From NCBI GenBank assembly GCA_950097015.1, contig CATNEN010000002.1, positions 8,742,001 through 8,806,000 on the forward strand: a stretch of 64,000 nt of DNA, written 5' to 3'. The translations under genes and the position numbers were made by a program. Each line of letters opens with the position of its first letter. Position 1 is the stretch's first letter. Shown piece by piece: positions 3,243-26,642 of the stretch. The notes beneath the pieces were generated by a model. It was given only the letters and a program-made list of their open reading frames with translations, did no database searches and was not told the origin of the DNA. This stretch comes from Macrostomum hystrix (taxonomy: Eukaryota; Animalia; Platyhelminthes).

Positions 3243-4358
3243 TTATGAGACTGAGCGCACCAGCCCAAAGAAGCTGCTGATTTCAGTCCCCGTCATGGTG
3301 TCGTTCACAATGGCCACGGCCTGTACCGTGCCGTTCAGAATCCGCGAATCTCCGGGCCGAAATCCCATACGGAGGCAGTAGCAGTTCAGAACAGCAGATC
3401 CAGCATATGTATTTGCATGAGACACACTCGACACCGGCACGATTCCCGCCTTGGAGTAGAAGCTCGGGCTCTGCGGCAGCAATGATGTCACTCCAAGCTC
3501 GACGAAGTCGTTTGGGTCAAACGTGTGTGTTGCGGAGCCAGTTATGTATACCTCAGCAGAGTAGTTGAAACGAAAAAAGAGCAAGCCCCAACCGCTTGCG
3601 TGTCCATCCCAGAAACCTGCACCAATTGCCATTGTGTCGCATGTGTAGGTCTCAAATAGCGTGGCCTCTCTTGGTGTCACCCGCTTCAGTCTGATCAGCC
3701 AGGTGAGACCCTGCTTCAAGTTGGCGAACTCGACTCCTTCCAGCCACATCTTGGACGATACTCCGTTGAACTTGGCTCCCTCTCTGATGAACTCGACTGA
3801 CTCCGACTTCCACTGCTGCGTCTGGCCGCACACCAAGTTGCTCTTGCTGGCATGCGAGTCGTCACTCATCACCCAGGCTCCATGCAGCTTTGAGCCCACA
3901 ATGCTCATCAGCTTCCTGCTCAACTTCATGAATTTGACGGCTCTAGCATTGGCGAATGCAGCACAGCTGTGGAGTGTGTTGATCCCATTGCTGGCTAGTG
4001 CATCGATGAGGTGGCACATAGCAATGTATTGGAACAGGGCGCACTGGCGAGTGTCCGCGTCGAACTGGACAACCAACAGACCATCCGTTTTCTCCGCAGC
4101 GAGAGCACAATGGTGAACAGAGCTTAATGGGGCCGTCCAAAATGCCAGAGAGTCGCTCAGGCACTGCTTCGTCTCCAGTCTGAGCCAGTTTAAGCGACAC
4201 GTGCAGCTGGTTGAAGTCACCAGGCATGCAATAGCGATCAGGGTGAGGTCTGCAAGTTCGTTAAAATATTGCATATACATGCACCAGCTAAATATTAAAA
4301 TCGAAATATAAAATAAAATAGTTATATTTTGAGCATTTCACTTACTTGTTATCTGCAT
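3243..4358 (-). CDS. Secreted PAN/apple-like + LamG (ConA-like lectin fold) protein, subtype A, copy A1 (~339 aa)
   Basis: Exon 1 is 4358-4346 (ATGCAGATAACAA|gtaagt), followed by a phase-1 intron 4345-4250 (ttgcag|) and exon 2 at 4249-3243. The spliced N-terminus MQITNLTLIAIACLVTSTSC is signal-peptide-like. LamG-type motifs include GAWVMSDD, GAKFNGVSSKMWL and LNGTVQAVAIVNDTMTGTEISSFF. Domain names come from motif recognition, not an HMM run. Confidence 0.85.
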
Positions 4359-4941
4359 GCTACAGTTTGACTAAGTGAGAAAGATAATACGAAATTTATT
4401 CTTCACAAGCCGTCTACTGAGCATTGGCTTGCATATCACTATAGCTTTGCTGTTCTGTCGCGACAGGCAGTCATGCAGCAGAGCGGGTTTTAATCTAGAA
4501 ATATTTTTAGAATTAGAATAGAATAGAATAGCCAATCATTTGACGCAAAATTGCCAGAATCTTTTTTAGCAAACAGGCACTGGGAGTCCTGCTCGCTCAC
4601 TTAGCTTTATTGCTGCTCAGCACATCGGCCCTTGCGCATTGTTACTAGCACATTTAGCGTATGAAACACTAAAAGCTAGATATTAGGGTATTTTTAGCGA
4701 CACAGGGCTTCTTAAATTTTGTATCTGGAGGTAGTTTCGTCTGGTGTACAGGCTCCAGGCATGTTTTAGCTGATTATAGTCTTGTACTTGTACTTTTGCA
4801 GTCAGAAGTTTTCAATATTTTATCGGTCTTCAATACACTGCAGATGCGCTTTGGGAGGGCCCCATTTGTCCTCCGACATTGGGCAGGCGACTTTTGCTGC
4901 GTTGAGCAACTGCGCCCCTCTACTCAGTGGATTTTTCTCTA

Positions 4942-5177
4942 CTCAGCAGGAAGCTGATGAGCGCTGTGGGCTTGAAGCTCCGAGCAGCCTTTGTGATGAG
5001 TGACGACACGATAAAGAGGCCAGTAAGAGCAACTTGGTGTGATTTGAGTCGCAGACAGTCTAACTAACAAGCGATGTAGCAAGGTTCAATGGAGTGACAT
5101 CAAGGATGTGGCTAGAGGGATTTGAGTTCGCCAACTTGCAGCAACGGCCCGGTGCCCTTAGCGGCCTCATCAAATTC
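4942..5177 (+). pseudogene. Inverted relic of the PAN-LamG family
   Basis: The plus strand translates as LSRKLMSAVGLKLRAAFVMSDD / EASKSNLVC / ARFNGVTSRMWLEGFEFANLQQ, with frameshifts and deletions. It lies in the opposite orientation to all intact copies. Confidence 0.8.
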
Positions 5178-6384
5178 ACCATGACCGATAGTGAAGTTTT
5201 GATTTTTCTAGCAAGGCGACACTGATCTTCCTTTTGTGTGCTTGCCCGATTTGATTACGCTTCTGTACAGTTTGGCGGAGTGGGGATCATTATATTTTTC
5301 TGATAGAATTCATTACTTTATTTGATGCATTTTTAAGGCTCTGCCTGTCGGCTGCAGGGTGAAGGCAAGATTGGGCGCGCAAAAAGGGTAATTAAACATG
5401 GCTAAGCAGAAAATATGTGTACAACTGGCTGTCATCCACGAGCCAATCACAAGCAGTCCAGAGCCGTTTGCGAATTCCAGAAAAGTTTATAGAAGTCTCA
5501 GAAAGAGCTACCCATTGCGCGGCATCAAATTTGGACAGTCGGGTCTTACTAATTGCATGGTTAATGCAGCTACTACCGAGACCTGAGCCTCTCATCCTGA
5601 GAATTTGACAGCGCCAATCCGAAGTGACTTTAGTGGAGTCTTTCTGTATTATCTGCAATATCTGAGCAGCTCCTATACAAACGTTGAGTAAAAAACACTA
5701 GAGGGAGAAAATACATTCTAGAATAGACTGGTTTGCTCACTAACTGGGCTGAAAGGAATTCCCAGCACAAGTGTTCTTTTGTCTGTGAAGATGCGTTTTG
5801 CAATAAATTTTTCAGCCAAGTTTTAGCGTTTCGTCTTGTCACTAAGGCATCTTGCCTTTAGTGTGATCAAATGGCTAGGCTGTCGGCATGTAAAACAACC
5901 ATAAGCCTATGGCAACCTGGGCAACATGAGGCAATGGTCTATTAGCTCGTACGTACGCTACTGCACGCAGGTTTTCATAAATTAGTCTCATAAAATATTA
6001 ATAAGTTTTCTGTACCCGGAAAAAAACTGTCGTCGGAGACGCGCCATTGTTGGCTTCGCATTGGCTTCCATTGCAAGCTTCTGGAAATATTTCTCCATTA
6101 TAGCCACGGTGGAATCGACTGTCGCGCTTTTCATTTTTGGGCATTCTATAAGCTTGTGTGCATTTTTAACAATTCATGCTGAGTAGATACTGCCTTAGCT
6201 GACTGGAGCTGCATCGTATTTAAATTGATGCACTCACGTGCACTCACGCACTTCGAGTCGACAAGAGGGTTCCGGCCAGTCATGCCAGTGACCAAAGAAT
6301 TCTGCGAAGCGACTTTGCTTGTTCTCGAATGATTTTCGGGTGACAAGCGAGTTTATTCAAGTATAAACTATAGATAAATTACAA

Positions 6385-6613
6385 CAATTGCAGCAGGGCT
6401 GCAGGCAATGCCAATCAGCCCTGACTGTCGCATCTTCAGGCAGTGTAAACTTTCACTATTGTACCGATGCGAATGGACCTCAAAGGCGCAAATTGCACAA
6501 CAAGCCCACAAGCCCTCTATCTGCCCCAAATGCAAAGTGTGGCTTCGACGTGGAATCGAGCTCAGGGACCTTGGTGCGAGAGGCACACGCGTTAACCGCT
6601 GTGCCACTCACCC
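6385..6613 (-). mobile_element. tRNA-derived SINE copy, internally deleted
   Basis: Shares the head (gtggaatcgagctcagggaccttggtgcgagaggcacacgcgttaaccgctgtgcca on the plus strand), the body and the tail remnant tgcagcagggctg with the 1271-1640 element. Confidence 0.75.
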
Positions 6614-6867
6614 TAAAAACTTTAGATAAAGAGTACATGAATAAACAATAACCTCTGATTATTAAATTCAATGCTGCCACCATTGATACAAAATACAACT
6701 TTGCTGAAGAATTGAGAACTCGTTTTACTTTTCTAAGCAAGTAGTTCATTTTTTAAGTAACCCTATGGCCCAGGAGTTCAGTAAAGCTCCGTAGCTCGAG
6801 GCTGATTGTAAGTCAATGCAATGCAAATCAATTCTTTGCAAGAGATGCAAGCCGTCCATTTCTGGCG

Positions 6868-7953
6868 TCAGCGCACCAGCCCAAAGAAGCTGCTGATTTC
6901 AGCCCCCGTCATGGTGTCGTTCACAATGGCTACGGCCTGTACCGTGCCGTTCAGAATTCGCGAATCTCCGGGCCGAAATCCCATACGGAGGCAGTAGCAG
7001 TTCAGAACAGCAGATCCAGCATATGTGTCAGCATGAGACACACTCGACACCGGCACGATTCCCGCCTTGGAGTAGAAGCTCGGGCTCTGCGGCAGCAATG
7101 ATGTCACCCCAAGCTCGGCAAAGGCGTTCGGGTCATACGTGTTTGTTGCGGAGCCAGTTATGTATACCTCAGCAGAGTAGTTGAACCGGAAGAAGTATAA
7201 GCCCCAACCGCTTACGTGTCCATCCCAGAAACCTGCACCAATTGCCATTGTGTCGCATGTGTAGGTCTCAAATAGCGTGGCCTCTCTTGGTGTCACCCGC
7301 TTCAGTCTGATCAGCCAGGTGAGACCCTGCTTCAAGTTGGCGAACTCGACTCCTTCCAGCCACATCTTGGACGATACTCCGTTGAACTTGGCTCCCTCTC
7401 TGATGAACTCGACTGACTCCGACTTCCACTGCTGCGTCTGGCCGCACACCAAGTTGCTCTTGCTGGCATGCGAGTCGTCACTCATCACCCAGGCTCCACG
7501 CAGCTTTGAGCCCACACTGCTCATCAGCTTCCTGCTCAACTTCATGAATTTGACGGCTCTAGCATTGGCGAATGCAGCACAGCTGTGGAGTGTGTTGATC
7601 CCATTGCTGGCTAGTGCATCGATGAGGTGGCACATAGCAATGTATTGGAACAGGGCGCACTGGCGAGTGTCCGCGTCGAACTGGACAACCAACAGACCAT
7701 CCGTTTTCTCCGCAGCGAGAGCGCAGTGGTGAACAGAGCTTAATGGGGCCGTCCAAAATGCCAGAGAGTCGCTCAGGCACTGCTTCGTCTCCAGTCTGAG
7801 CCAGTTTAAGCGACACGTGCAGCTGGTTGAAGTCACCAGGCATGCAATAGCGATCAGGGCAAGGTCTGCAGCGTGTAATTTATTTAATCCAATCAGTTTC
7901 TCAATTTGCAATTATACTAAAAAAGCAGTAGTGTGCTCACTTGTGATTAACAT
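6868..7953 (-). CDS. Secreted PAN/apple-like + LamG protein, subtype A, copy A2 (~336 aa)
   Basis: Exon 1 is 7953-7941 (ATGTTAATCACAA|gtgagc), followed by a phase-1 intron 7940-7866 and exon 2 at 7865-6868 ending in TGA. The N-terminus is MLITNLALIAIACLVTSTSC, and exon 2 is about 97% identical to A1 by eye. Confidence 0.85.
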
Positions 7954-8475
7954 GATCCTTGCTTCGTTTTTTTAGCCTTTAGGCCTTCAGAAGGTATCCA
8001 GAAACGTTTCCCTGTTCTACAGATTTTTCTACTTTTTCTACAGATTGTTCTTCTTTTTACTCGTAATGGTTCGAAGGGTCGTCGCGTTTCCGTTTGCTAT
8101 TGTTTGTAACCTCTTGGCATGTTCTCCGATGCTGTGTATTTTCTGCAGTCTCTAATGAAGCCAGCTGCTACGTCTTTTTGCTATGCAACAATTTTTCCCG
8201 CAGCTTGACCGCCAATCAAGCGACCTGCCTAATCATGAAAGAAATTTCCCTGGGCCTTTACTTCACGCTTTTGTCTAGAATTTTTGAATCTTTCATTGTT
8301 AAGCTTAAAGGACTGATACTTTGATGGCCTGTCGTTAACATCACAGCTTTTTAGTTGTTAAGAAATTTGACAGTATTTAGCTTGAAACTTTTTGTCTAGT
8401 TCTGCAACTGTGTGGCTCGTAATAACACAGCAGCGACTTTGGCGCGCTGTTGAAAACAAAAGGCTGCCTTCAGCT

Positions 8476-8977
8476 GTTCAGTCATGGACTGGGGTGTTCA
8501 GTCATGGACTGGGGTGTTCGGTCATGGACTGGGGTGTTCAGTCATGGACTGGGGTGCTCAGTCATGGACTGGGGTGTTGAGTCATGGACTGGGGTGTACA
8601 GTCATGGACTGGGATGTTCAGTCATGGACTGGGGTGTTCGGTCATGGACTGGGGTGTTCAGTCATTGACTGGGGTGTTCAGTCATGGACTGGGGTATTCA
8701 GTCATGGACTGGGGTATTCAGTCATGGACTGGGGTATTCAGTCATGGACTGGGGTGTTCAGTCATGGACTGGGGTGTACAGTCATGGACTGGGGTGTTGA
8801 GTCATGGACTGGGGTGTACAGTCATGGACTGGGGTGTTCGGTCATGGACTGGGGTGTTCGGTCATGGACTGGGGTGTTCGGTCATGGACTGGGGTATTCA
8901 GTCATGGACTGGGGTGTTCGGTCATGGACTGGGGTGTTCAGTCATGGACTGGGGTGTTCAGTCATGGACTGGGTGTT
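8476..8977. repeat. 20-bp minisatellite (gttcagtcatggactggggt)n
   Basis: About 25 tandem units. The similar ~30-bp sequence aacaa.aggct...ttcagctgttcagtc flanks both sides. Confidence 0.95.
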
Positions 8978-10013
8978 GCCAACAAGAGGCTAGTTTCAGC
9001 TGTTCAGTCGCAGGCCGGCACAACGCAGCAGGCGGACCGGCGGACCGCAGCATGAGCAGTTCCCAATGGCATCTTTGGAACTGAAAACAGTTGAGAATCA
9101 CGTGTCTTGCTGCAGGACAGAAATTGCCTCTCCTGGGTTAAGATTCGAACTCTAGACCTAATTGGTTGTGAGTCAGAAGCTAAAACTTGCACCGGGCTTC
9201 AATTTCTGCTAAATTTTACTAAATTTTACTAAAGTTTACCAAAAGGTGGAGTAATAGGTAATTCTAGCAAGCGGATGCCAGGCAAATGGATTTATGAAAT
9301 TTAATAGAATCTGTTGTTTCCCCATTTGTGTGTAGTTCGACATCGCTGTGGAAATTTGAGCATTTGGTGTGTTTTCTGCCTTCTGTCTTCGCAAATGCCT
9401 TCACTATTTTTTTATTTTACTTTATTCCCAGGGGCAACATGCTGAGCCATCTCAGCTGAAACTGCAAGCCTGTTCCTTTTTAAGGCTGCCATTGTGGAAA
9501 TCAAGCAGATAGGGCGCGCAGCCCTGAGAAATGAACAGCCGTCACTCTGAAACTACGCTACAGTCAATTGAGTTGATGTGAGAAACGACATGTGGCAAAA
9601 GTATGAAAAAACGTCAGGTAAAAATAAGAAGCAAAGCAGTTGAAATTTTCTCTCATTAAGACATCTAAAGACATTAACTAAAAAATTCGCATATCAGTGA
9701 GGTACCACAAACAGCTGCTGCCATTACCTCATTGCTTTGGTCTTTTGACGGAAATGATTTCCATAGCAACGACGCAGCGAATCTTTAATAGGTTGGACAT
9801 GCAGGCTTGGAACACTGACGGAGAGTGACCTTCGTGCCAGGCAAGCCAGCTTGGAGTTCCTCTGCCGTTTGACATCATTTTTGGATACTGACATACTGTG
9901 ATCCGAGTTGGCGTATAGGTCAAGGACTTTTTAATTACAAGCTAGTAATACTTTAGTAACCTTAGTAGTACATGTTAGTAGTAAAGTAGTATACCTTAAA
10001 AGTCCATAAAACA

Positions 10014-10353
10014 TTGCTGGAAGGCTGCGGGCAATGACGCATCACTTGGTGACACTAGACCTGCAGCCAGCCAGGAGGCAATTCTGCCCATTTCGCTGAC
10101 TCCTGAGCACACACGCACACAGATACTGTACGCTCACACAGGTGTGTACATCTGCCCTGACTTTCTCATCGTCAGGCAGTGTACATTTCACTGCGCCTAC
10201 GAGTTTCCCCCTTCAGGGCGCAAATTGCACGACAATCCCCCAAGCCTTCTCCCCGCGGCTGCGCCCCAAATAAATGTGGCCTCGCCGTGGAATCGAGCTC
10301 AGAGACCGTGGTGCCAGGGGCAAACGCGTTAGAACCGCTCTGCCACTCAGCCT
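10014..10353 (-). mobile_element. tRNA-derived SINE copy
   Basis: Colinear with 1271-1640 from tail to tRNA-like head (tggcagagcgg ... gagctcgattcc on the minus strand). No clear TSD was seen. Confidence 0.85.
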
Positions 10354-10523
10354 CTTAGTAGTCCTTGGCATAGGTGAGCCGAATTTTCATGCGAAATATT
10401 CGCATCATACTACTGCCTGGCAAGGCGTTTTAATCCGCTGACATTTCACTGTGATTAGTCTCATACCAAAGCTGACACTACTGGCCACCAAAGTACTTCG
10501 TTTAAAAAGTATATTTTTCTTAG

Positions 10524-10674
10524 CCGGATGGTCTCCGTGAAAATCTGAGTGGCGTCACCTTGCAGAGGTCACAGTTGACGCCGACTTCCACGAAGATGCT
10601 CGAGTCGAAGGTGTTCGTAGACTAGGCTGTCCGAAACTCAGCAGCAGTCGGTTCGAACCTAGGGAATTAAAAGC
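10524..10674 (-). pseudogene. Relic of subtype-B PAN-LamG exon 2
   Basis: tgacgccgacttccacgaagatgctcgagtcgaaggtgttcgtag...gcagtcggttcgaacc aligns to B1 tgacgccgacttccacgaaggcgctcgagttgaaagtgttcgtgg...gtagtcggtgcgaacc. It is internally deleted and frameshifted. Confidence 0.75.
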
Positions 10675-11269
10675 AACTAAAACTAGGAAATCTATCCCAA
10701 AATCCATCAAAATCCCAAGAGCACTGGTGTTACAGTTTATATACTTCGGCAGCGGTTTCATTCACGACACTGTTGCTGCTGTGAACTGACTCTGATGAGT
10801 CCACCTTATAGACGTCTGCTATAAGGCATTGAGCAGCAAAAGGGCTTGACACTGAAGCTGAGCATCACTGAGACCTGGGGGAAGCATCCCAGGAATTAAT
10901 AAATTAATAATTTATTACCATACTCCTGAGCGCACACGCGCACACATAGCTCGTACCCTACAGATGGCAGGTTCAGAAAACTCTGGCTGATAATCGACTT
11001 AGATTCTTGCTGCCCCACTAACGGGATGAAGGGATGGATGAAGGCGAGGCGAGTTACTCGTAATTCTTGGGCTCACATCTAATTATACCCCGTTGAGAAA
11101 CTCGCGTTTATAACCATTGTACACTTTTGGAGGGGTTTTTCCCAGCCACCAATGAATCCTGATTGTTGCACGCCTTTACTGTCTACGTCCCGAACCCCGC
11201 CAGCTCGTCTCGCTGTCTTACAGCCTTCCCCAAACTGAGTTCTCTTGCTGCCCTAAGTCAGGCGGTCTA

Positions 11270-11403
11270 CTTTTGGACCATAGACATTTCGGGCGTGCAC
11301 CAATCGACAAAATAATCGATTGCTGCACGCCCCGCGAGACCGCTGGCTATATCAGCTCCGTGAGACTGATTGTTGCACGCCCCAACTGTCTGTGGTCCAA
11401 AAG
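11270..11403. mobile_element. Short inverted-repeat element (MITE-like) flanked by TA
   Basis: Including the flanking TA, tacttttggaccatagacatttcgggcgtgcaccaatc pairs with gattgttgcacgccccaactgtctgtggtccaaaagta (38-bp arms, 4 mismatches). A second copy sits in the duplicated block near 24950-25085. Confidence 0.5.
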
Positions 11404-11450
11404 TATACAATGCCAGTGATAAACGGCTATTCGTACTGCAAAGTTTTAAA

Positions 11451-14093
11451 CCTCTTCCTGCCTAACCAGAATCCATCATTTGTCTGTTTCCGACTGCTTG
11501 GTAAGCAGTGCTTACCATAGATATTTTCTGGCATAGCATGTCACTCCCATTCCTGCCGGCTAGGCTTACTAATCAAGCATGGCTTAAACTGATGCACTAG
11601 ACGGGAAGGAAATGAGCAGCACTACTGCCTTTAGCCAGTAAAGCAGTCTCACTTGCTGCCTGCTTGGTATGCGCTGCTTACCATAGAAATCTGTGCGCAG
11701 CAAGTCCCCTTTACAGTAGGACAAGCTTTCTTACAATAATATTCTGACCATCTTGTTTGTTAGTCTTTTCTCACTAAATTTCTCAGTACGAGCGTACTCA
11801 CTGAAAACCTGCAGTACATGGCTTCTCTCTCTGGGATCGAATACATGACCTCAGACAGTGAAGTGAGCCTCGACTCCTACTTAACAATAGACGAGGAGCC
11901 TGGTGAGGAGGTTGGCATCGAAGACGCACTGAATGGCAATCCTCCAATCATGGAAGAGCCTGAAGGCGAGGAAGGACAGGAGTTCGCAGATGGCGAAGCG
12001 GCTGAAGTTGAGAATGTTTGGCGGCTTGTCGAGCCTGGCTCCGATGAAGGGACAGAAAGTTTTGAATTTACCGGAACTGCTGGCCTAAATCCTAACGTTT
12101 TAATTCCTGACAATGTTGAGCTGGATAAGTCTTTATTTTTACAAATGTTCCTTTCTGATGAGCTTTTCCAACGTCTCGCTGAATGGACGAACGCCAAGGT
12201 GGCCACCATGCTGATGGAGCTGGATCCTGAGACGGACGTCCTTCCACCTATCTTGACTAGCTGGCGGGACTGCACCGCAAGCGAGATGAAAAAGCTAGTC
12301 GGCATGCACCTGTACATGGGCCTGAACAAAAAGTCCGAGCTACATGACTACTGGAGCACAGATGAATTTCACTGCATGCCATACTTTCAGAAGCCCGAGG
12401 CGTTAGCTCGCGATAGATTCAAGCAGCTGCTGACATTTCTGCGCTTCTACGACAGCAGGGAAGAAGCAAGCGCAGATCCACTACTCAAGATTCGTCCATT
12501 TATGAATATGCTGCAAGCTTATTGCAAGAACAACTACAGGCCTGAGTGTGAAGTGAGCATTGACGAGTCCTTGATACTGTTTAAGGGGCGACTTCGTTTT
12601 AAACAGTACATTCCAACAAAGCGGGCCAAGTCCGGAATGAAGATGTACTGTCTGTGTGAGTCCAAGTCTGCTTATCTCTTCAATTTCATAGTGCACTCAA
12701 CTCCAGAAGAAAATCGGAAGTTCGGCTCCACACAGGACTGTGTAAATCTTTCTCTCAGCGAGCGAATCGTAGCTGAGCTGGCCAATGACATTCTGGACCA
12801 AGGGTACAGAATATTTACCGACACCTGGTTTACATCATACAGGTTATCCCAGTTCCTTATTGACCATTCAACGTTCCTGACGGGCACCGTGAGGCCAGAC
12901 CGAGGAGTTCCGGCTCAGCTTCGGCAGGCTGTGGTGGTTCCGAATAATGTAGCTTTCGTGAGGAAGGGACGAGTTCTAATTGTGAAGGCTGTCGAGAGGA
13001 AGCAGAGTGGAGTCAAGACCGTGTATTTGCTGGACACGAAGGACGTTGCGTCAAAGGCCGAGAAAGTCAAGATCAATCGAGCTGGACAACATGTGGCAGT
13101 GCAGAAGAGCCGCAGTGTCTTAACTTACAATCGCTGCATGGGTGGTGTGGACAAGCTAGACGGCACCCTGCAGCCTTATGACGCCGGCAGAAAAACAACA
13201 AAATGGTTCCACAAGCTGGGCTTGCACATGTGCCTTCAAATGGTGCGCAACGCTTGGGTTCTGTACTCCAAGTGTGGTGGCCAGAATACCTTCATCAAAT
13301 ATCTCGAAGCCAGCATCCGCGGGTTAGTAGAGCGAACTGGAAATGGCAGGAAGCGACCGGCTTCCATGCTGCGCTCAGTTGCAGTCGTTGAGCAGCATTT
13401 TCCGGAGAAAATCCCAGGTCGTCCTGCCCAGCCCAGACCTACGAAAAGGTGCAGAATTTGCTACAGTTCTGCCAGGTCCCGGCGCACAATTTATTTCTGC
13501 AGCCGATGTCCAGGATGCCCGGGACTTTGTTTGTTCGATTGCTTCCAACGTTGGCATTCGCAGCGTTGAAGTATCGACAGAATGGACCAGCTTAACACTC
13601 AAACTGACTTAAGTTTTCAGTTTTGCCTCTTGTCTTTAGCTTAAATTTGTTAATGACTATTATTTATTTATTCTAGTTTTGCTAGTTATAGTTTCTGCAT
13701 AGTGTACCAGTCGTACTCTCTGTATGCGCTGGTAAGTTAGATTGGACAGATGTATCGGCTGTTTCGATGCTCTTCTTTGTTCTTTAGTTATTTTTACAAT
13801 ACTACGAGAAAGTTAAGATATTGGAATTCAAATTTATCAGAGCCTTCTTGAACAAAATAGAATGTTTGAACTAAAAGCTATAAAGGAGATGTACAAACAA
13901 CACATAATTAAGAATGTACAAATTAAAATTTATGCTTGTCAGAAAAAAATCTAGAATATTCACGGTAAGCTGTGCTTACCACTGCAGGCAGGAACCGATA
14001 GTATCAATTTAACCATAGAATTCTATCTACTCAAGCCGGCAGGAAGTAAAATTAGGGCTTGGTAAGCACTGCTTACCATCAGTCTTCTCGTGG
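11451..14093 (+). mobile_element. piggyBac DNA transposon, full length (2643 bp)
   Basis: It is absent from the paralogous site at 25129-25132. It is flanked by TAAA (11447-11450) and TTAA (14094-14097), both ends start with CC, and a palindromic 19-bp subterminal repeat occurs at 11499-11517 and 14060-14078. It contains an intact transposase ORF. Confidence 0.93.
11818..13569 (+). CDS. piggyBac-family (PGBD4-like) transposase, 583 aa
   Basis: The N-terminus is acidic. The DDD triad contexts are SIDESLILFKGR, IFTDTWFTSY and YNRCMGGVDKLD. The C-terminal Cys-rich domain is RCRIC...IYFCSRCPGCPGLCLFDCFQRWH. The ORF is uninterrupted. Confidence 0.95.
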   Translation: MASLSGIEYMTSDSEVSLDSYLTIDEEPGEEVGIEDALNGNPPIMEEPEGEEGQEFADGEAAEVENVWRLVEPGSDEGTESFEFTGTAGLNPNVLIPDNVELDKSLFLQMFLSDELFQRLAEWTNAKVATMLMELDPETDVLPPILTSWRDCTASEMKKLVGMHLYMGLNKKSELHDYWSTDEFHCMPYFQKPEALARDRFKQLLTFLRFYDSREEASADPLLKIRPFMNMLQAYCKNNYRPECEVSIDESLILFKGRLRFKQYIPTKRAKSGMKMYCLCESKSAYLFNFIVHSTPEENRKFGSTQDCVNLSLSERIVAELANDILDQGYRIFTDTWFTSYRLSQFLIDHSTFLTGTVRPDRGVPAQLRQAVVVPNNVAFVRKGRVLIVKAVERKQSGVKTVYLLDTKDVASKAEKVKINRAGQHVAVQKSRSVLTYNRCMGGVDKLDGTLQPYDAGRKTTKWFHKLGLHMCLQMVRNAWVLYSKCGGQNTFIKYLEASIRGLVERTGNGRKRPASMLRSVAVVEQHFPEKIPGRPAQPRPTKRCRICYSSARSRRTIYFCSRCPGCPGLCLFDCFQRWHSQR

Positions 14094-14503
14094 TTAACCT
14101 CGGGCGCTACGCGCCCTCGGTTAAAAACATTGCAGCACTCATAGCCGTTTATTACTATATCATTGCTGCATGTTTGAAAAGATCTTGTATTATGTAGCTC
14201 GTATAAAGCTCACTTTAAATATTTTTGCCTTTATTCCAGTGTATTTTTGTATATTAAAAAGTTGCATGGATTAGAAAAACAGCGCAAGATAATATATAAA
14301 ATAATTAACAAACTGCTCATGAGTTTGGATACAGTATTATACGTTGTGATTAAAAATGAAACAGGGCCGAAAACATCTCTCTTTTTTCAGTATTATAGAA
14401 TATGTATTGTTCGTGTTACGAGCTCGTACTATTCAGTTCACTATAGTTAAGCCACTTGCACTCAGAGAATCGTTAGATTTCGCTACTGTCTCCCATGAAT
14501 CTG

Positions 14504-15606: not shown

Positions 15607-16768
15607 GTGGGGCCGTTAGAATCCACAGTGTCCGCCACACAGAAACAGAGCTTGCAGGTCTTGCCGTCTCACTACGAATTTGAAGGTTGAAATTATTTTT
15701 TTCTTGCTGGACGTACAAGACCAACGTAACCCAAGCAACCAAGACCCCCCCAGCCAATGATTGTGAGTAGTGAAGAGATGAGTTTACTTGACCTCGATTG
15801 GACCCATCCGCCATTGTAAAAGGACTTTCTGTCAAAAAAGTTAATTTGTTGAAAACAGTCATCCGCCTCGTCGCTTGGAGTGAGAGGATGCCGCAGCAGC
15901 GTCATCCGTATGGCGCCATGCCAACCCACGCGTCGGTCCGCGTTCCCGCGGCTACTGGCAGGCTTGGGAGGGAGTGTTGATGACAAGTTCATTTTTATGC
16001 GGGTCTAAATATGGAGGCACACCAGGCTTCTATTGCTGCCTTTTGTCCATGCTTGATAAAAAACCAACAAGATATACGCAGAACTCAAAGCTTTTTTATA
16101 GAATGTCCTTGCAACGCATAAGCGCAGTAAATTTACCAGAGGATCGCTGCAGATATCGATTTGTTTTTCATGCACAAAGGGGCGTTTTTGCGAGAGGTCC
16201 TGAACTGAGAGCATACTTTGTAGCCAATGACCACTAGGTGCAGATGGACGGGAAACTGCGTTTCCTAGAAAAAGTTTATGAGGCTTGTTTTTCACCGAAA
16301 AATGCGCCATGGTGATCAGACATTTCCACTTTTTCTTCTCAAATCAGTTGACTGCGATTGAATGTGGTTGAATTTTAGTTAATACATGTAATTAAATTAC
16401 ACTCGCTCGACTCGAGAGTTGTGATTAGCTCGTACAAGTATTGTAGTATGTAGTTCCTGTTTAGATTAAAAAGTGTCTAAACTGAATCAAAGTCATAGGA
16501 TTCGTGCTTACTTATGCGTACTCGTACATAGATCGATCTCATCTCTCCCCTGGTTTATCGCTGGCGTAACTACTGTACTAGTCGGTACTGGAAGGCAGGC
16601 CAGTACCGTTGGTTAGCAAAGAGGCTGAGAGCTTTAAATAGACTTGCAAGACTAACTAACAAGCCAGAGGCTGAACGGCACGACTATCAACTGACACACG
16701 GACATGTGCTTGCAGCCCGCGTCAGTGCGACCAGCTGCGACCTACTGAACAGGGCTGGCCTATCTGAC

Positions 16769-18284: not shown

Positions 18285-18371
18285 TGTCGGCGACGCTCAC
18301 GAAGGTGTCAGCGAAGTAGACGACTTCAAGCATTCAAGACAGCCGCTAGTGAGTCTGGGAGTTCGGTGGGA

Positions 18372-19353
18372 TAATGAGAACTTAGAGAAGGGAGTGGGGT
18401 AATGAGAACTTAGAGAAGGGAGTGGGGTAATGAGAACTCAGGGAAGGCAGTGGGGTAATGACAACTCAGGGAAGGGAGTGGGGTAATGAGAACACAGGGA
18501 AGGGAGTGGGGTAATGAGAACACAGGGAAGGGAGTGTGGTAATGACAACTCAGGGAAGGGAGTGGGGTAATGAGAACACATGGAAGGGAGTGTGGTAATG
18601 ACAACTCAGGGAAGGGAGTGTGGTAATGACAACTCAGGGAAGGGAGTGTGGTAATGACAACTCAGGGAAGGGAGTGTGGTAATGACAACTCAGGGAAGGG
18701 AGTGGGGTAATGAGAACACATGGAAGGGAGTGTGGTAATGACAACTCAGGTAAGGGAGTGGGGTAATGAGAACACATGGAAGGGAGTGTGGTAATGACAA
18801 CTCAGGGAAGGGAGTGGGGTAATGAGAACACATGGAAGGGAGTGTGGTAATGACAACTCAGGGAAGGGAGTGGGGTAATGAGAACACATGGAAGGGAGTG
18901 TGGTAATGACAACTCAGGGAAGGGAGTGGGGTAATGAGAACACAGGGAAGGGAGTGTGGTAATGACAACTCAGGGAAGGGAGTGGGGTAATGAGAACACA
19001 TGGAAGGGAGTGTGGTAATGACAACTCAGGGAAGGGAGTGTGGTAATGACAACTCAGGGAAGGGAGTGTGGTAATGACAACTCAGGGAAGGGAGTGTGGT
19101 AATGACAACTCAGGGAAGGGAGTGTGGTAATGACAACTCAGGGAAGGGAGTGTGGTAATGACAACTCAGGGAAGGGAGTGTGGTAATGACAACTCAGGGA
19201 AGGGAGTGTGGTAATGACAACTCAGGGAAGGGAGTGTGGTAATGACAACTCAGGGAAGGGAGTGGGGTAATGGGAACTCAGGGAAGGGAGTGGGGTAATG
19301 AGAACACATGGAAGGGAGTGTGGTAATGAGAACACAGGGAAGGTAGTGGGGTA
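18372..19353. repeat. 28-bp G-rich minisatellite (gggaagggagtg[g/t]ggtaatga[g/c]aac[t/a]ca)n
   Basis: About 35 units. It ends exactly at the segmental-duplication junction. Confidence 0.95.
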
Positions 19354-19550
19354 GCAGCCTTTGTGATGAGTGACGACACGATAAAGAGGCCAGTAAGAGC
19401 AACTTGGTGTGATTTGAGTCGCAGACAGTCTAACTAACAAGCGATGTAGCAAGGTTCAATGGAGTGACATCAAGGATGTGGCTAGAGGGATTTGAGTTCG
19501 CCAACTTGCAGCAACGGCCCGGTGCCCTTAGCGGCCTCATAGAGGGAGAA
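19353..19550 (+). pseudogene. Duplicated part of the inverted PAN-LamG relic
   Basis: Matches 4983-5170. Confidence 0.8.
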
Positions 19551-20225
19551 AATACATTCTAGAATAGACTGGTTTGCTCACTAACTGGGCTGAAAGGAAT
19601 TCCCAGCACAAGTGTTCTTTTGTCTGTGAAGATGCGTTTTGCAATAAATTTTTCAGCCAAGTTTTAGCGTTTCGTCTTGTCACTAAGGCATCTTGCCTTT
19701 AGTGTGATCAAATGGCTAGGCTGTCGGCATGTAAAACAACCATAAGCCTATGGCAACCTGGGGCAACATGAGGCAATGGTCTATTAGCTCGTACGTACGC
19801 TACTGCACGCAGGTATTCATAAATTAGTCTCATAAAATATTAATAAGTTTTCTGTACCCGGAAAAAACTGTCGTAGGAGACGCGCCATTGTTGGCTTCGC
19901 ATTGGCTTCCATTGCAAGCTTCTGGAAATATTTCTCCATTATAGCCACGGTGGAATCGACTGTCGCGCTTTTCATTTTTGGGCATTCTATAAGCTTGTGT
20001 GCATTTTTAACAATTCATGCTCAGTAGATACTGCCTTAGCTGACTGGAGCTGCATCGTATTTAAATTGATGCACTCACGTGCACTCACGCACTTCGAGTC
20101 GACAAGAGGGTTCCGGCCAGTCATGCCAGTGACCAAAGAATTCTGCGAAGCGACTTTGCTTGTTCTCGAATGATTTTCGGGTGACAAGCGAGTTTATTCA
20201 AGTAAAAACTATAGATAAATTACAA

Positions 20226-20454
20226 CAATTGCAGCAGGGCTGCAGGCAATGCCAATCAGCCCTGACTGTCGCATCGTCAGGCAGTGTACACTTTCACTAT
20301 TGTACCGATGAGAATGGACCTCAAAGGCGCAAATTGCACAACAAGCCCACAAGCCCTCTATCTGCCCCAAATGCAAAGTGTGGCTTCGACGTGGAATCGA
20401 GCTCAGGGACCTTGGTGCGAGAGGCACACGCGTTAACCGCTGTGCCACTCACCC
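20226..20454 (-). mobile_element. tRNA-derived SINE copy (duplicate of 6385-6613)
   Basis: Near-identical to 6385-6613. Confidence 0.75.
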
Positions 20455-20709
20455 TAAAAACTCTAGATAAAGAGTACATGAATAAACAATAACCTCTGAT
20501 TATTAAATTCAATGCTGCCACCATTGATACAAAATACAACTTTGCTGAAGAATTGAGAACTCGTTTTACTTTTCTAAGCAAGTAGTTCATTTTTTTAAGT
20601 AACCCTATGGCCCAGGAGTTCAGTAAAGCTCCGTAGCTCGAGGATGATTGTAAGTCAATGCAATGCAAATCAATTCTTTGCAAGAGATGCAAGCCGTCCA
20701 TGTCTGGCG

Positions 20710-21795
20710 TCAGCGCACCAGCCCAAAGAAGCTGCTGATTTCAGCCCCCGTCATGGTGTCGTTCACAATGGCTACGGCCTGTACCGTGCCGTTCAGAATC
20801 CGCGAATCTCCGCGCCGAAATCCCATACGGAGGCAGTAGCAGTTCAGAACAGCAGATCCAGCATATGTGTCAGCATGAGACACACTCGACACCGGCACGA
20901 TTCCCGCCTTGGAGTAGAAGCTCGGGCTCTGCGGCAGCAATGATGTCACCCCAAGCTCGGCAAAGGCGTTCGGGTTATACGTGTTTGTTGCGGAGCCAGT
21001 TATGTATACCTCAGCAGAGTAGTTAAAACGAAAAAAGAGCAAGCCCCAACCGCTTGCGTGTCCATCCCAGAAACCTGCACCAATTGCCATTGTGTCGCAT
21101 GTGTAGGTCTCAAATAGCGTGGCCTCTCTTGGTGTCACCCGCTTCAGTCTTATCAGCCAGGTGAGACCCTGCTTCAAGTTGGCGAACTCGACTCCTTCCA
21201 GCCACATCTTGGACGATACTCCGTTGAACTTGGCTCCCTCTCTGATGAACTCGACTGACTCCGACTTCCACTGCTGCGTCTGGCCGCACACCAAGTTGCT
21301 CTTGCTGGCATGCGAGTCGTCACTCATCACCCAGGCTCCACGCAGCTTTGAGCCCACACTGCTCATCAGCTTCCTGCTCAACATCATGAATTTGACGGCT
21401 CTAGCATTGGCGAATGCAGCACAGCTGTGGAGTGTGTTGATCCCATTGCTGGCTAGTGCATCGATGAGGTGGCACATAGCAATGTATTGGAACAGGGCGC
21501 ACTGGCGAGTGTCCGCGTCGAACTGGACAACCAACAGACCATCCGTTTTCTCCGCAGCGAGAGCGCAATGGTGAACAGAGCTTAATGGGGCCGTCCAAAA
21601 TGCCAGAGAGTCGCTCAGGCACTGCTTCGTCTCCAGTCTGAGCCAGTTTAAGCGACACGTGCAGCTGGTTGAAGTCACCAGGCATGCAATAGCGATCAGG
21701 GCAAGGTCTGCAGCGTGTAATTTATTTAATCCAATCAGTTTCTCAATTTGCAATTATACTAAAAAAGCAGTAGTGTGCTCACTTGTGATTAACAT
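20710..21795 (-). CDS. Secreted PAN/apple-like + LamG protein, subtype A, copy A3 (~336 aa)
   Basis: Exon 1 is 21795-21783, the intron is 21782-21708 and exon 2 is 21707-20710. It is the segmental duplicate of A2, with a few substitutions (e.g. K>M, P>R, D>N and an A1-like tract). Confidence 0.85.
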
Positions 21796-22317
21796 GATCC
21801 TTGCTTCGTTTTTTTAGCCTTTAGGCCTTCAGAAGGTATCCAGAAACGTTTCCCCTGTTCTACAGATTTTTCTACTTTTTCTACAGATTGTTCTTCTTTT
21901 TACTCGTAATGGTTCGAAGGGTCGTCGCGTTTCCGTTTGCTATTGTTTGTAACCTCTTGGCATGTTCTCCGATGCTGTGTATTTTCTGCAGTCTCTAATG
22001 AAGCCAGCTGCTACGTCTTTTTGCTATGCAACAATTTGTTCCGCAGCTTGACCGCCAATCAAGCGACCTGCCTAATCATGAAAGAAATTTCCCTGGGCCT
22101 TTACTTCACGCTTTTGTCTAGAATTTTTGAATCTTTCATTGTTAAGCTTAAAGGACTGATACTTTGATGGCCTGTCGTTAACATCACAGCTTTTTAGTTG
22201 CTAAGAAATTTGACAGTATTTAGCTTAAAACTTTTTGTCTAGTTCTGCAACTGTGTGGCTCGTAATAACACAGCAGCGACTTTGGCGCGCTGTTGAAAAC
22301 AAAAGGCTGCCTTCAGC

Positions 22318-22640
22318 TGTTCAGTCATGGACTGGGGTGTTCGGTCATGGACTGGGGTGTTCGGTCATGGACTGGGGTGTTCAGTCATGGACTGGGGTGT
22401 TCAGTCATGGACTGGGGTGTTCAGTCATGGACTGGGGTGTTGAGTCATGGACTGGGGTGTTGAGTCATGGACTGGGGTGTTGAGTCATGGACTGGGGTGT
22501 ACAGTCATGGACTGGGGTGTACAGTCATGGACTGGGGTGTACAGTCATGGACTGGGGTGTTCAGTCATGGACTGGGGTGTACAGTCATGGACTGGGGTGT
22601 TCAGTCATGGACTGGGTTATTCAGTCATGGACTGGGTGTT
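22318..22640. repeat. 20-bp minisatellite, shorter duplicate of 8476-8977
   Basis: About 16 units of gttcagtcatggactggggt. Confidence 0.95.
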
Positions 22641-23683
22641 GCCAACAAGAAGCTAGTTTCAGCTGTTCAGTCGCAGGCCGGCACAACGCAGCAGGCGGAC
22701 CGGCGGACCGCAGCATGAGCAGTTCCCAATGGCATCTTTGGAACTGAAAACAGTTGAGAATCACGTGTCTTGCTGCAGGACAGAAATTGTCTCTCCTGGG
22801 TTAAGATTCGAACTCTATACCTAATTGGTTGTGAGTCAGAAGCTAAAACTTGCACCGGGCTTCAATTTCTGCTAAATTTTACTAAATAAATTTTACTAAA
22901 GTTTACCAAAAGGTGGAGTAATAGGTAATTCTAGCAAGCGGATGCCAGGCAAATGGATTTATGAAATTTAATAGAATCTGTTGTTTCCCCATTTGTCTGT
23001 AGTTCGACATCGCTGTGGAAATTTGAGCATTTGGTGTGTTTTCTGCCTTCTGTCTTCGCAAATGCCTTCACTATTTTTTTTATTTTACTTTTATTCCCAA
23101 GGGCAACATGCTGAGCCATCTCAGCTGAAACTGCAAGCATGTTCCTTTTTAAGGCTGCCATTGTGGAAATCAAGCAGATAGGGCGCGCAGCCCTGAGAAA
23201 TGAACAGCCGTCACTCTGAAACTACGCTACAGTCAATTGAGTTGATGTGAGAAACGACATGTGGCAAAAGTATGAAAAAACGTCAGGTAAAAATAAAAAG
23301 CAAAGCAGTTGAAATTTTCTCTCATTAAGACATCTAAAGACATTAACTAAAAGATTCGCATATCAGTGAGGTACCACAAACAGCTGCTGCCATTACCTCA
23401 TTACTTTGGTCTTTTGACGAAAATGATTTCCATAGCAACGACGCAGCGAATCTTTAATAGGTTCCACATGCAGGCTTGGAACACTGACGGAGAGTGACCT
23501 TCGTGCCAGGCAAGCCAGCTTGGAGTTCCTCTGCCGTTTGACATCATTTTTGGATACTGACATACTGTGATCCGAGTTGGCGTATAGGTCAAGGACTTTT
23601 TAATTACAAGCTAGTAATACTTTAGTAACCTTAGTAGTACATGTTAGTAGTAAAGTAGTATACCTTAAAAGTCCATAAAACAT

Positions 23684-24033
23684 TGCTGGAAGGCTGCGGG
23701 CAATGACGCATCACTTGGTGACACTAGACCTGCAGCCAGCCAGGAGGCAATTCTGCCCATTTCGCTGACTCCTGAGCATACACTCACACATTTAACAGTA
23801 CGCAGGCACACGCTCGCATAGGTGCGTACATCTGCCCTGACTTTCTCATCGTCAGGCAGTGTACACTTCACTGCGCCTACGAGTTTCCCCCTTCAGAGCG
23901 CAAATTGCACGACAATCCCCCAAGCCTTCTCCCCGCGGCTGCGCCCCAAATAAATGTGGCCTCGCCGTGGAATCGAGCTCAGCGACCGTGGTGCCAGGGG
24001 CAAACGCGTTAGAACCGCTCTGCCACTCACACC
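23684..24033 (-). mobile_element. tRNA-derived SINE copy (duplicate of 10014-10353)
   Basis: Same flanks and body as 10014-10353, with a locally divergent patch near 23775-23825. Confidence 0.85.
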
Positions 24034-24204
24034 TCTTAGTAGTACTTGGTATAGGTGAGCCGAATTTTCATGCGAAATATTCGCATCATACTACTGCCTG
24101 GCAAGGCGTTTTAATCCGCTGACATTTCACTGTGATTAGTCTCATACCAAAGCTGACACTACTGGCCACCAACACACTCCGTTTAAAAAGTTTATTTTTC
24201 TTAG

Positions 24205-24355
24205 CCGGATGGTCTCCGTGAAAATCTGAGAGGCGCCACCTTGCAGAGGTCACAGTTGACGCCGACTTCCACGAAGATGCTCGAGTCGAAGGTGTTCGTG
24301 GACTAGGCTGTCCGAAACTCAGCAGCAGTCGGTTCGAACCTAGGGAATTAAAAGC
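24205..24355 (-). pseudogene. Duplicate of the subtype-B relic
   Basis: Matches 10524-10674. Confidence 0.75.
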
Positions 24356-25100
24356 AACTAAAACTAGGAAATCTATCCCAAAATCCATCCCAAATCCCAA
24401 GAGCACTGGTGTTACAGTTTATATACTTCGGCAGCGGTTTCATTCACGACACTGTTGCTGCTGTGAACTGACTCTGATGAGTCCACCTTATAGACGTCTG
24501 CTATAAGGCATTGAGCAGCAAAAGGGCTTGACACTGAAGCTGAGCATCACTGAGACCTGGGGGAAGCATCCCAGGAATTAATAAATTAATAATTTATTAC
24601 CATACTCCTGAGCGCACACGCGCACACATAGCTCGTACCCTACAGATGGCAGGTTCAGAAAACTCTGGCTGATAATCGACTTAGATTCTTGCTGCCCCAC
24701 TAACGGGATGAAGGGATGGATGAAGGCGAGACGAGTTACTCGTAGTTCTTGGGCTCACATCTAATTATACCCCGTTGAGAAACTCGCGTTTATAACCATT
24801 GTACACTTTTGGAGGGGTTTTTCCCAGCCACCAATGAAGCCTGATTGTTGCACGCCTTTACTGTCTATGTCCCGAACCCCGCCAGCTCGTCTCGCTGTCT
24901 TACAGCCTTCCCCAAACTGAGTTCTCTTGCTGCCCTAAGTCAGGCGGTCTACTTTTGGACCATAGACATTTCGGGCGTGCACCAATCGACAAAATAATCG
25001 ATTGCTGCACGCCCCGCGAGACCGCTGGCTATATCCGCTCCGTGAGACTGATTGTTGCACGCCCCAACTGTCTGTGGTCCAAAAGTATACAATGCCAGTG

Positions 25101-25187
25101 ATAAACGGCTATTCGTACTGCAAAGTTTTAAACCTCGGGCGCTACGCGCCCTCGGTTAAAAACATTGCAGCACTCATAGCCGTTTAT
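25101..25187. other. 87-bp imperfect palindrome containing the empty piggyBac target site
   Basis: It has 42-bp arms (ataaacggctat...gggcgc / gcgccc...atagccgtttat), 7 mismatches and a 3-nt loop (tac). The piggyBac splits the other copy. Confidence 0.85.
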
Positions 25188-25538
25188 TACTATATCATTG
25201 CTGCATGTTTGAAAAGATCTTGTATTATGTAGCTCGTATAAAGCTCACTTTAAATATTTTTGCCTTTATTCCAGTGTATTTTTGTATATTAAAAAGTTGC
25301 ATGGATTAGAAAAACAGCGCAAGATAATATATAAAATAATTAACAAACTGCTCATGAGTTTGGATACAGTATTATACGTTGTGATTAAAAATGAAACAGG
25401 GCCGAAAACATCTCTCTTTTTTCAGTATTATAGAATATGTATTGTTCGTGTTACGAGCTCGTACTATTCAGTTCACTATAGTTAAGCCACTTGCACTCAG
25501 AGAATCGTTAGATTTCGCTACTGTCTCCCATGAATCTG

Positions 25539-26642
25539 TCAGCGCACCAGACTAAAGAAGTTGCGAATTTCATTCTCTGTCATCGTGTCATTCATGATGG
25601 CCACTGACCGGATGGTCCCCTGAAACATCCTGGAGTCGCCATGTCGATATCCGATTGTGAAGCAGGAGAAGTTCTGGGGTACCGGCGAGAAGATGTTGGA
25701 CTTGGTGACCAGCGACGGCGGCACGAAGGCAGCGTTGGAAAAGAATGTAACGTTTATCGGCGCCGAAGTAGTGACGCCGACTTCCACGAAGGCGCTCGAG
25801 TTGAAAGTGTTCGTGGACACAGATGTCGTAAACTCGGCAGTAGTCGGTGCGAACCCGGAGAAGTACAGGCCCCTATTACCTATAATTCCATCCCAGAGGC
25901 CGGACCCAACTGTGTGGGTGATGCAGTTGGCATTCTCCAGAAGCGGACACTCTTTCGGAACGCGTTTGTATCTAATTAGCCAGGTTAGAGCCTGCCCCTG
26001 GTTGCCGAAATTCACAGCTTCCAGCTTCATCTTGGACGACACTCCGTTGAACTTGGCTCCCTCACTGATGAACTCGACTGACTCCGACTTCCACAGCAGT
26101 GTCTGGCCGCACACCAAGTTGCTCTTGCTGGCTTCCTCATCGTCGCTCATCACCCACGCTGCACGCAGCTTCGAGCCCACACTGCTCATCAGCTTCCTGC
26201 TCAGCGTCATGAAGTTGACGGCTCTGGCATTGGCGAACGCAATGCATCTTTTTGGTGTGCTGATCCCATTGCTGCCTAGGGCATCGATGAGGTGGCACAC
26301 GGCAATGTACTGGAACAGCGAGCACTGGCGAGTGTCCGAGTCGAACTGAGCCACCAGCAGGCCGGTCAGTTGGCTGCCATAGACGACGCACTCGATGTCA
26401 GCCCGCGCCGATGCGCCCTGCACCGCCAGAGTCTCGGCCAGGCAGCTCGCCGTCTCGAGCCTCTGCCACTGAGCCGAGGCGGTGCAGTTGATCAGCCGGG
26501 CCAGACAGACCAGGCCGAGCAGAGCTGCACCTGAAACTGAGGCGGCATATTCGAATTATAGTATATAGAAGGTATAATGTTCCGTCGATTGAATCAAGGG
26601 CCGAAAGGTGCGAAACCTACTTGCACCAGCTCGCTTTAGCAT
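25539..26642 (-). CDS. Secreted PAN/apple-like + LamG protein, subtype B, copy B2 (~337 aa)
   Basis: Exon 1 is 26642-26621, the intron is 26620-26531 and exon 2 is 26530-25539. It is nearly identical to B1 (F>V in ECVFY/ECVVY). Confidence 0.85.

Follow-up and report, generated by a model that had tools for sequence, protein, structure and literature searches.

A stretch of 64,000 nucleotides from the flatworm Macrostomum hystrix (GenBank assembly GCA_950097015.1, contig CATNEN010000002.1, positions 8,742,001 to 8,806,000; the whole stretch is referred to below as the window) carries five intact genes of a large gene family, three of type A (A1, A2 and A3) and two of type B (B1 and B2). We consider it rather probable that this family encodes secreted two-domain extracellular binders, and that its arrays have been shaped by duplication together with gene conversion acting between bounded ends. 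Both the folds of the family and the processes by which it evolves are known ones, while its combination of a PAN/apple-like domain with a concanavalin A-like (ConA-like) jelly roll is a previously undescribed architecture. No paper describing the family was found in the literature searched, in agreement with the preliminary description of this DNA, whose author did not recognise the family as a described one.

Structure of the intact genes

A six-frame listing of open reading frames (ORFs) of the window revealed five long minus-strand frames, i.e. three of type A, listed with 345–347 aa, and a pair of type B. Reading of the DNA and exact pattern matching placed the start of each gene further upstream, in a tiny separate exon, and thereby recovered for all five genes the arrangement put forward in the preliminary description: a first exon of 13 or 22 nt, a phase-1 intron and one large exon. 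The resulting models are as follows.

3243-4280, minus strand: A1, ORF as listed
3243-4249, minus strand: A1, exon 2, coding for the predicted signal-peptide remainder, PAN-like domain, helix and jelly roll; stop included
4250-4345, minus strand: A1, intron, phase 1
4346-4358, minus strand: A1, exon 1, 13 nt (ATG + 10) with the GT donor next to it (DNA reading and exact patterns)
6868-7911, minus strand: A2, ORF as listed
6868-7865, minus strand: A2, exon 2 (ORF and DNA reading; modelled, pLDDT 89)
7866-7940, minus strand: A2, intron, 75 nt, phase 1
7941-7953, minus strand: A2, exon 1, 13 nt (DNA reading and exact pattern match)
14504-15388, minus strand: B1, ORF as listed
14504-15495, minus strand: B1, exon 2 (Laminin_G_3, 27.6 bits)
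15496-15584, minus strand: B1, intron, 89 nt, phase 1
15585-15606, minus strand: B1, exon 1, 22 nt (DNA reading and exact pattern match)
20710-21753, minus strand: A3, ORF as listed
20710-21707, minus strand: A3, exon 2, twin of A2
21783-21795, minus strand: A3, exon 1, 13 nt (exact pattern match)
25539-26423, minus strand: B2, ORF as listed
25539-26530, minus strand: B2, exon 2, twin of B1 with 3 aa differences
26621-26642, minus strand: B2, exon 1, 22 nt (exact pattern match)

The introns of all five models are 75–96 nt long, begin with a GT donor, end with an AG acceptor and are in phase 1. Among 30 further paralogues, most of those belonging to the same clade contain, in the equivalent place, an ATG, an exon of 7–19 nt, a GTAAGT-like donor and a TTTCAG acceptor; their introns are unrelated in sequence, and the sequence of the tiny exon 1 differs as well. 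Several distant paralogues are intronless and carry the initial methionine and the hydrophobic leader contiguously in one open frame. Both the recurrence of the tiny exon and the contiguous leader of the intronless copies support the splice model and the reading of the leader as a signal peptide. The intron within the signal-peptide region is kept in some subclades and absent from others, so it was gained or lost in the course of the family's evolution. A1 ends with three additional codons (SVS; 3246-3254, minus strand) beyond the stop position of A2 and A3, its stop having been shifted.

The hydrophobic stretch of the leader opens exon 2, with the methionine and 4–7 further residues supplied by exon 1. 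It is the only hydrophobic 19-residue window in the proteins encoded in the window: a scan of these proteins detected neither a hydrophobic C-terminal tail nor any other hydrophobic window, in agreement with the earlier observation that the products lack a transmembrane segment or obvious anchor. Of 37 aligned family members, 26 have the N-glycosylation sequon found at A2 N315; the median is 4 sequons per protein. The A and B proteins are probably small (~335 aa), secreted and N-glycosylated, as judged from their sequences. The exon 2 sequence served as the query in every search and fold prediction reported below.

Two-domain architecture of the proteins

The AlphaFold model of A2 exon 2 (331 residues), obtained with a 37-member family alignment, had a predicted local distance difference test score (pLDDT) of 89.1 and a predicted template modelling score of 0.85. 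Residues 115–331 of the model form a ConA-like jelly roll, which matched more than 140 chains at Z≥8 in a VIA fold search. The best match was domain 4 of the Geobacillus AbnA arabinanase (5hon; Z 18.7, root-mean-square deviation 3.2, 187 residues aligned). Further matches included (i) the HCN-type domain of clostridial neurotoxins and NTNH (Z 15–16.6), (ii) the lectin-like domain of trypanosome sialidase (Z 15.4), (iii) CBM40 modules (14.4–14.5), (iv) pentraxins (~14) and (v) laminin LG modules (~11.9). Foldseek aligned the A2 model with trans-sialidase at E 3e-8.

In sequence searches, B1 and B2 matched Pfam Laminin_G_3 (PF13385) with 27.6 bits, which is exactly the curated cut-off, and 20 of the 37 family members matched it at E≤0.1 (best 4.9e-7). 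A1–A3 matched no Pfam family at E≤1, the models of classical LamG domains (Laminin_G_1/2) did not match the family, and a PDB sequence search with A2 gave no match. The LamG-like jelly roll of the preliminary description is confirmed by the AlphaFold model and the strong fold matches, with threshold-level support from Pfam Laminin_G_3. The family shares its beta-sandwich with Laminin_G_3/ConA-like modules at large (AbnA domain 4, CBM40, the sialidase lectin domain, pentraxins, TSPN, LamG; Z 18.7–11.4), and in trypanosome sialidases a long helix likewise leads into the jelly roll. In contrast, sequence identity to these modules is ~10%, and their catalytic or partner domains are absent from the A/B family. 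Assignment to the trypanosome sialidases or trans-sialidases was rejected, since only the lectin-like domain aligns (residues 391–626 of the 2a75 chain) and the 331-residue protein has no propeller. The binding region of clostridial neurotoxin/NTNH was likewise discarded: the resemblance is limited to a generic HCN-type jelly roll with 7–12% identity, and no other toxin domain is present.

The N-terminal domain, modelled alone (pLDDT 84.6), resembles PAN/apple domains. With modest scores, 17 of the 18 top VIA rows (Z 7.0–4.7) were PAN, apple, MANEC or WSC domains, the exception being a mimivirus protein. The Z scores were 7.0 for MANEC, 6.6 for HAI-1, 6.5 for plasminogen, 6.1 for the hepatocyte growth factor (HGF) N domain and the leech anti-platelet protein (LAPP), 5.8 for SML-2, 5.6 for the MIC4 apple domain, 5.5 for WSC and ~5 for the apple domains of kallikrein and factor XI. 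The top ~30 Foldseek rows were all of PAN/apple type (probability 0.72–0.98, with 0.9–0.98 for the top ~20; E 0.03–0.3; template modelling score 0.33–0.52). Pfam PAN models did not match the five window proteins at E≤1 or the 37 members at E≤0.1, and PDB sequences searched with a profile of the domain gave only noise. The models thus support a PAN/apple fold at the level of the fold, as the preliminary description had suggested; the sequence itself does not establish that the domain belongs to the PAN family.

The domain shares with PAN/apple domains (HGF N, plasminogen PAp, MANEC of HAI-1, LAPP, Sarcocystis SML-2, Toxoplasma MIC4, factor XI) a sheet packed on a helix, and these are likewise extracellular, cysteine-stabilised binding modules. 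Unlike them, it has no Pfam match, scores at most Z 7 and follows its own cysteine pattern. The helix holds a single cysteine in place of the CxxxC pair (HCALAA in type A, IECVFY in type B), as noticed earlier, and 5–6 cysteines are conserved in the 37-member alignment (A2 residues 15, 29, 47, 69, 78 and 95). A PAN-like part of the mimivirus protein R655 (9crz_B) resembles the domain at Z 6.4, which is likewise no more than a lead. In the ESM Atlas, PAN_1 and Laminin_G_3 clusters appeared as leads only (score 0.89), the nearest cluster being a giant-virus PAN_1 family.

Size and distribution of the family

A2 exon 2 matched at least 121 loci in the 220-Mb genome, which is a lower bound; this size had been missed in the preliminary description, whose author had proposed a genome-wide count. 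About 60–65 of the matches are full-length and free of stops, and ~30 are broken or partial. They are spread over contigs C1, C2, C3, C10, C11, C15, C31, C33, C34, C37, C38, C39 and C41, with tandem arrays at 7.87–7.97 and 8.54–8.77 Mb of C2, 17.7–20.5 Mb of C1 and 25.6–26.5 Mb of C38. A tree of 46 sequences resolved four well-supported clades. Sequences of Macrostomum lignano fall inside two of them, and the main clades therefore predate the split from that species. The genome analysed here is distinct from that of M. lignano, its best match to P0002 being 58%.

A word search with the family profile retrieved 11 proteins; all named sources were M. lignano, and the rest were metagenome contigs of the Joint Genome Institute (JGI). 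When 1.84 billion representatives were scanned in full with a hidden Markov model (HMM), 28 matched at E≤1e-30. Ten of the top matches were looked up, and comprised eight M. lignano proteins, one JGI contig and one giant repeat protein. The remaining ~3800 matches cover the jelly-roll half only (positions ~150–330), mostly in giant repeat proteins. Judged by these searches, the two-domain family so far appears restricted to Macrostomum, and its earlier interpretation as lineage-specific fits the finding of two-domain relatives only in M. lignano and a few metagenome contigs.

The M. lignano entries (UniProt A0A1I8H4S8, A0A1I8GAB7, A0A1I8F1U2 and others, and BOX15_Mlig033890g1) contain both domains, with a constant core and variable flanks like those described below. 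They are uncharacterised, and their automatic names (UBC core, COIA1, MAM, SPATA6 and others) are unrelated to the sequence or derive from fused gene models. BOX15_Mlig033890g1 (215 aa; NIVC01000195.1, 9880-10648) is a truncated model, with PAN-like coding continuing upstream in another frame; the frame break near position 9995 of NIVC01000195.1 indicates that this locus is frameshifted or mis-assembled. The JGI proteins P0001 and P0003 were tried as intron-free transcripts and rejected, as their contig is genomic and the N-terminus was read through the intron. This contig (JGI 3300019727, Ga0193976_1004720) is flatworm-like DNA in which a TTTCAG acceptor at ~333 precedes the true leader; the first ~12 residues of P0001 are not real, the called start lying inside the intron.

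Homogenised core and probable gene conversion

The coding sequences are mosaics of a constant core and strongly diverged flanks. In A2 the core occupies the following position.

7384-7701, minus strand: homogenised core of A2 (residues 55–160: second half of the PAN-like domain, long helix, first jelly-roll strands)

For 16 genes of the C2/C3 clade, the pooled proportion of synonymous differences (pS) was 0.12–0.22 in the core (A2 residues ~55–160, ~300 bp) versus 0.5–0.86 in both flanks. The neighbouring A2 and B1 show 87–93% nucleotide identity over residues 61–160 and 45–63% elsewhere. In one subclade on contig C1, with distances of up to 600 kb between its genes, pS was 0.00–0.06 for residues 21–160 and saturated (0.64–0.90) for residues 201–320. 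The same pattern of constant core and variable flanks was recognised in the M. lignano proteins P0012 and P0013 and in JGI fragments.

Core DNA gave 40 matches in the genome, mostly 83–90% identical and all within family members, and on these grounds a general genomic repeat and a mobile cassette were both rejected as explanations of the core. The comparison with M. lignano, which covers 42 codons and one frameshifted locus, gave a median core pS of 0.16 among paralogues within the genome versus 0.28 (minimum 0.24) between the species. Just outside the core the order was reversed (0.53 within the genome versus 0.45 to the M. lignano locus). A1 provides a related case: its 97% nucleotide identity to A2 and A3 is confined to positions 3230-4254, i.e. 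to exon 2, starting 5 nt before the splice acceptor and ending 13 nt past the stop, while its downstream flank can be aligned with that of A2 at only ~68% identity.

Low synonymous divergence of the core could also reflect a function at the nucleotide level, e.g. an overlapping gene in antisense, a structured RNA or a site targeted by small RNAs, and plus-strand ORFs of 151–241 aa do overlap the core in both A and B, the antisense frame being open in most members of the C2 clade. However, this frame is closed in other clades, where the mosaic persists with other core sequences. Dual coding of the core was rejected for this reason, the antisense ORFs not being conserved across clades. The ratio of non-synonymous to synonymous differences (pN/pS) in the core is similar to that in the flanks. 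A nucleotide-level function would also leave unexplained why the cores of paralogues in this genome resemble each other more than they do the M. lignano copy (with the 42 codons and single frameshifted locus mentioned above), and why the A1 exon is 97% identical to that of A2 amid flanks of ~68%. We regard this explanation as very improbable.

The restriction of core DNA to the family, the lack of a conserved antisense ORF, the closeness of the cores within the genome and the whole-exon identity of A1 amid diverged flanks together indicate that repeated gene conversion with bounded ends homogenises the core, on top of birth and death. Birth-and-death evolution, as originally proposed for this family, fits the data but is incomplete, since the pS mosaic suggests that bounded conversion shapes the family as well.

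Selection on the coding sequences

The ratio of non-synonymous to synonymous substitution rates (dN/dS) was 0.22–0.36 among A1, A2 and A3, 0.32 for B1/B2 and 0.38 for A2/B1 (dS 0.88). The genes of the window are under coding constraint. Pooled recent pairs gave a dN/dS of 0.44 for the N-terminal part with the core and 0.62 for the variable part, and no positive selection was detected in them (pooled pN/pS 0.44–0.62). A single pair, L025/L026, reached a pN/pS of 1.36 in the variable part, which is insufficient for a claim of positive selection; in old comparisons pS is saturated and the ratios are unreliable. The designation of these genes as diversifying in the preliminary description was not borne out by dN/dS values of ~0.2–0.7, which lie below 1.

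Segmental duplication, relics and neighbouring elements

Self-comparison of the window revealed that positions 5699-11454 and 19540-25136 are 97–98% identical, and positions 14096-18047 and 25131-29082 98.6% identical. The pairs A2+B1 and A3+B2 are two copies of one recent segmental duplication of ~13.8 kb. The window thus holds five intact genes, as first reported, but they are not independent paralogues: self-comparison reduces them to two gene types (three copies of A and two of B). An intact sixth paralogue (L006) lies immediately to the left of the window. The duplicated units, the family relics and the piggyBac transposon are listed below.

5699-18047: duplication unit 1, with A2, relic, piggyBac insertion, B1 and minisatellite (self-comparison)
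19540-29082: duplication unit 2, with A3, relic, B2 and minisatellite, without piggyBac (self-comparison)
4810-5207, plus strand: relic, query residues 72–198, two frame-shifted pieces with stops (tblastn)
10577-10705, minus strand: relic, residues ~210–253, with stops (tblastn)
19380-19541, plus strand: relic, duplicate of 5010-5207 with the same translated string (tblastn)
24258-24437, minus strand: relic, duplicate of 10577-10705 (tblastn and self-comparison)
11455-14095, plus strand: piggyBac element, in unit 1 only, with an intact 583-aa transposase ORF at 11818-13569 (DDE_Tnp_1_7, E 4.5e-68)

The decayed fragments carry stops or frameshifts, in keeping with the five relics mentioned previously, but they amount to four loci (in five pieces), and since the two later relics copy parts of the two earlier ones, only two independent decay events are represented. 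The empty site in unit 2, near 25131-25136, indicates that the piggyBac insertion is younger than the segmental duplication. The transposase carries a zinc-finger tail. Duplication, pseudogene relics and transposon insertion are all compatible with birth-and-death evolution.

These same features, i.e. relics, a piggyBac insertion and minisatellites around the genes, might suggest that the copies are non-functional, being decaying duplicates or transposon cargo. We consider this extremely improbable. The genome contains ~60–65 full-length open copies, splice sites are conserved, dN/dS is 0.2–0.7, the fold is conserved, the cysteines and a sequon are invariant or nearly so, and M. lignano has conserved members of the family. 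Outside family genes no core DNA was matched, terminal repeats belonging to the duplicated unit are absent, and piggyBac is present in one unit only.

Minisatellite arrays (self-match offsets of ~15–60 bp) crowd the window at the following positions.

8475-8993, 17444-18284, 18366-19353, 28479-29309, 30064-32403, 33355-34285 and 36207-36805: minisatellites (self-match)
38095-39137, 48139-52198, 52665-53913, 59753-60510, 61187-62246 and 63082-64000: minisatellites (self-match)

They generate spurious long ORFs, such as an 848-aa ORF at 29863-32409 and an ORF of TETSFLKP repeats at 17444-18187. A duplicated 128-aa Arg/Pro-rich ORF (16991-17377 and 28026-28412, minus strand), in GC-rich DNA adjoining the minisatellite of each unit, is probably non-coding.

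Proposed function and evolution

In the model that we favour, an A or B protein has a predicted cleavable leader followed by a divergent PAN/apple-like domain, which a helix of ~20 residues packs against a ConA-like, Laminin_G_3-type beta-sandwich. The task of such a protein may be to bind a glycan or a protein outside the cell, with different members presenting different jelly-roll surfaces. Extracellular ligand binding is the most likely activity of the family according to the fold models, as lectins and protein binders are known for both domain types, and carbohydrate-binding modules are what the jelly roll matches most closely in structure. The proteins could act as soluble lectin-like recognition or secretion components, for instance as defence factors of the surface or mucus; an immune, mucus or allorecognition role is pure inference. 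In this model the arrays evolve by two routes: (i) segmental duplication, the decay of copies to relics and the insertion of transposons, and (ii) repeated gene conversion with fixed boundaries, which keeps a core of ~300–480 bp near-identical in different paralogues, whereas the beginning of the PAN-like domain and the distal two-thirds of the jelly roll retain an ancient divergence.

Several observations weigh against this interpretation. With dN/dS below 1 there is no sign of selection for diversity, and mere age could account for the variable part. The PAN assignment combines modest Z scores (<8) with a non-canonical cysteine pattern and no HMM match. No ligand-binding residue, including known sugar- or calcium-binding ones, was identified in the family. 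The between-species test of the core comprises 42 codons and one M. lignano locus, itself frameshifted, and the core protein is well conserved between the species, so that its low divergence is partly due to purifying selection. Finally, look-ups of transcripts and assemblies with two intronless paralogues and with the best homologue from M. lignano found no exact product on record.

A different use of secreted proteins is also conceivable. The family could serve reproduction, with proteins secreted into prostate or seminal fluid, by the cement or shell gland or in the female tract, and could have expanded and diverged through sexual selection or conflict, these worms being hermaphrodites. It is large, lineage-restricted, tandemly arranged, secreted and fast-diverging, all of which would suit such a role, and the seminal-fluid proteins of Macrostomum are an active research field (PMC6953679). 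No member of the family is named in the Macrostomum seminal-fluid papers retrieved, dN/dS is below 1, and the major clades predate the M. lignano split and are not merely a recent burst. We regard a reproductive function as unlikely, though worth keeping in mind.

Less likely still, the proteins may be structural or matrix components of rhabdites or of adhesive or mucus granules, multiplied for dosage and not specific binders. The predicted signal peptide, the N-glycosylation sequons and the cysteine-stabilised domains agree with this, and the recent near-identical duplicates (A1–A3, B1–B2) suit dosage. However, dosage leaves unexplained the saturated divergence of the distal jelly roll beside a homogenised core, and the proteins are neither of low complexity nor repetitive.

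Within the binder interpretation, a more specific form is that the family constitutes a germline-encoded recognition repertoire, in which conversion would keep the scaffold (part of the apple-like domain, helix and first jelly-roll strands) uniform and selection would maintain dozens of anciently diverged distal jelly-roll binding surfaces, as a counterpart in flatworms of constant/variable lectin systems for immunity or self/non-self recognition. The uniform scaffold may then dock to a common partner or oligomerise. We regard this version as unlikely. Invertebrates have secreted recognition families with constant and variable parts, such as the FREPs of snails, which evolve by duplication and gene conversion. 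By analogy, FREP-type families are likewise large tandem sets of secreted lectin-type proteins that combine a conserved portion with a strongly diverged one for binding. Their domains are unrelated to those of A/B, and the likeness does not so far extend to somatic diversification, immune induction or positive selection.

Free-living flatworms are models of regeneration and sexual selection, and their secreted recognition molecules are almost unknown. The family described here, with ~60 or more intact genes and a clean constant/variable mosaic, provides a candidate set for expression screens and RNAi in Macrostomum lignano, and the mosaic lends itself to the study of how gene conversion is held within its boundaries. 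If the variable halves bind different ligands, the family would represent a kind of recognition repertoire new to invertebrates; if they do not, it would be an ordinary lineage-specific expansion of lectin-like genes.

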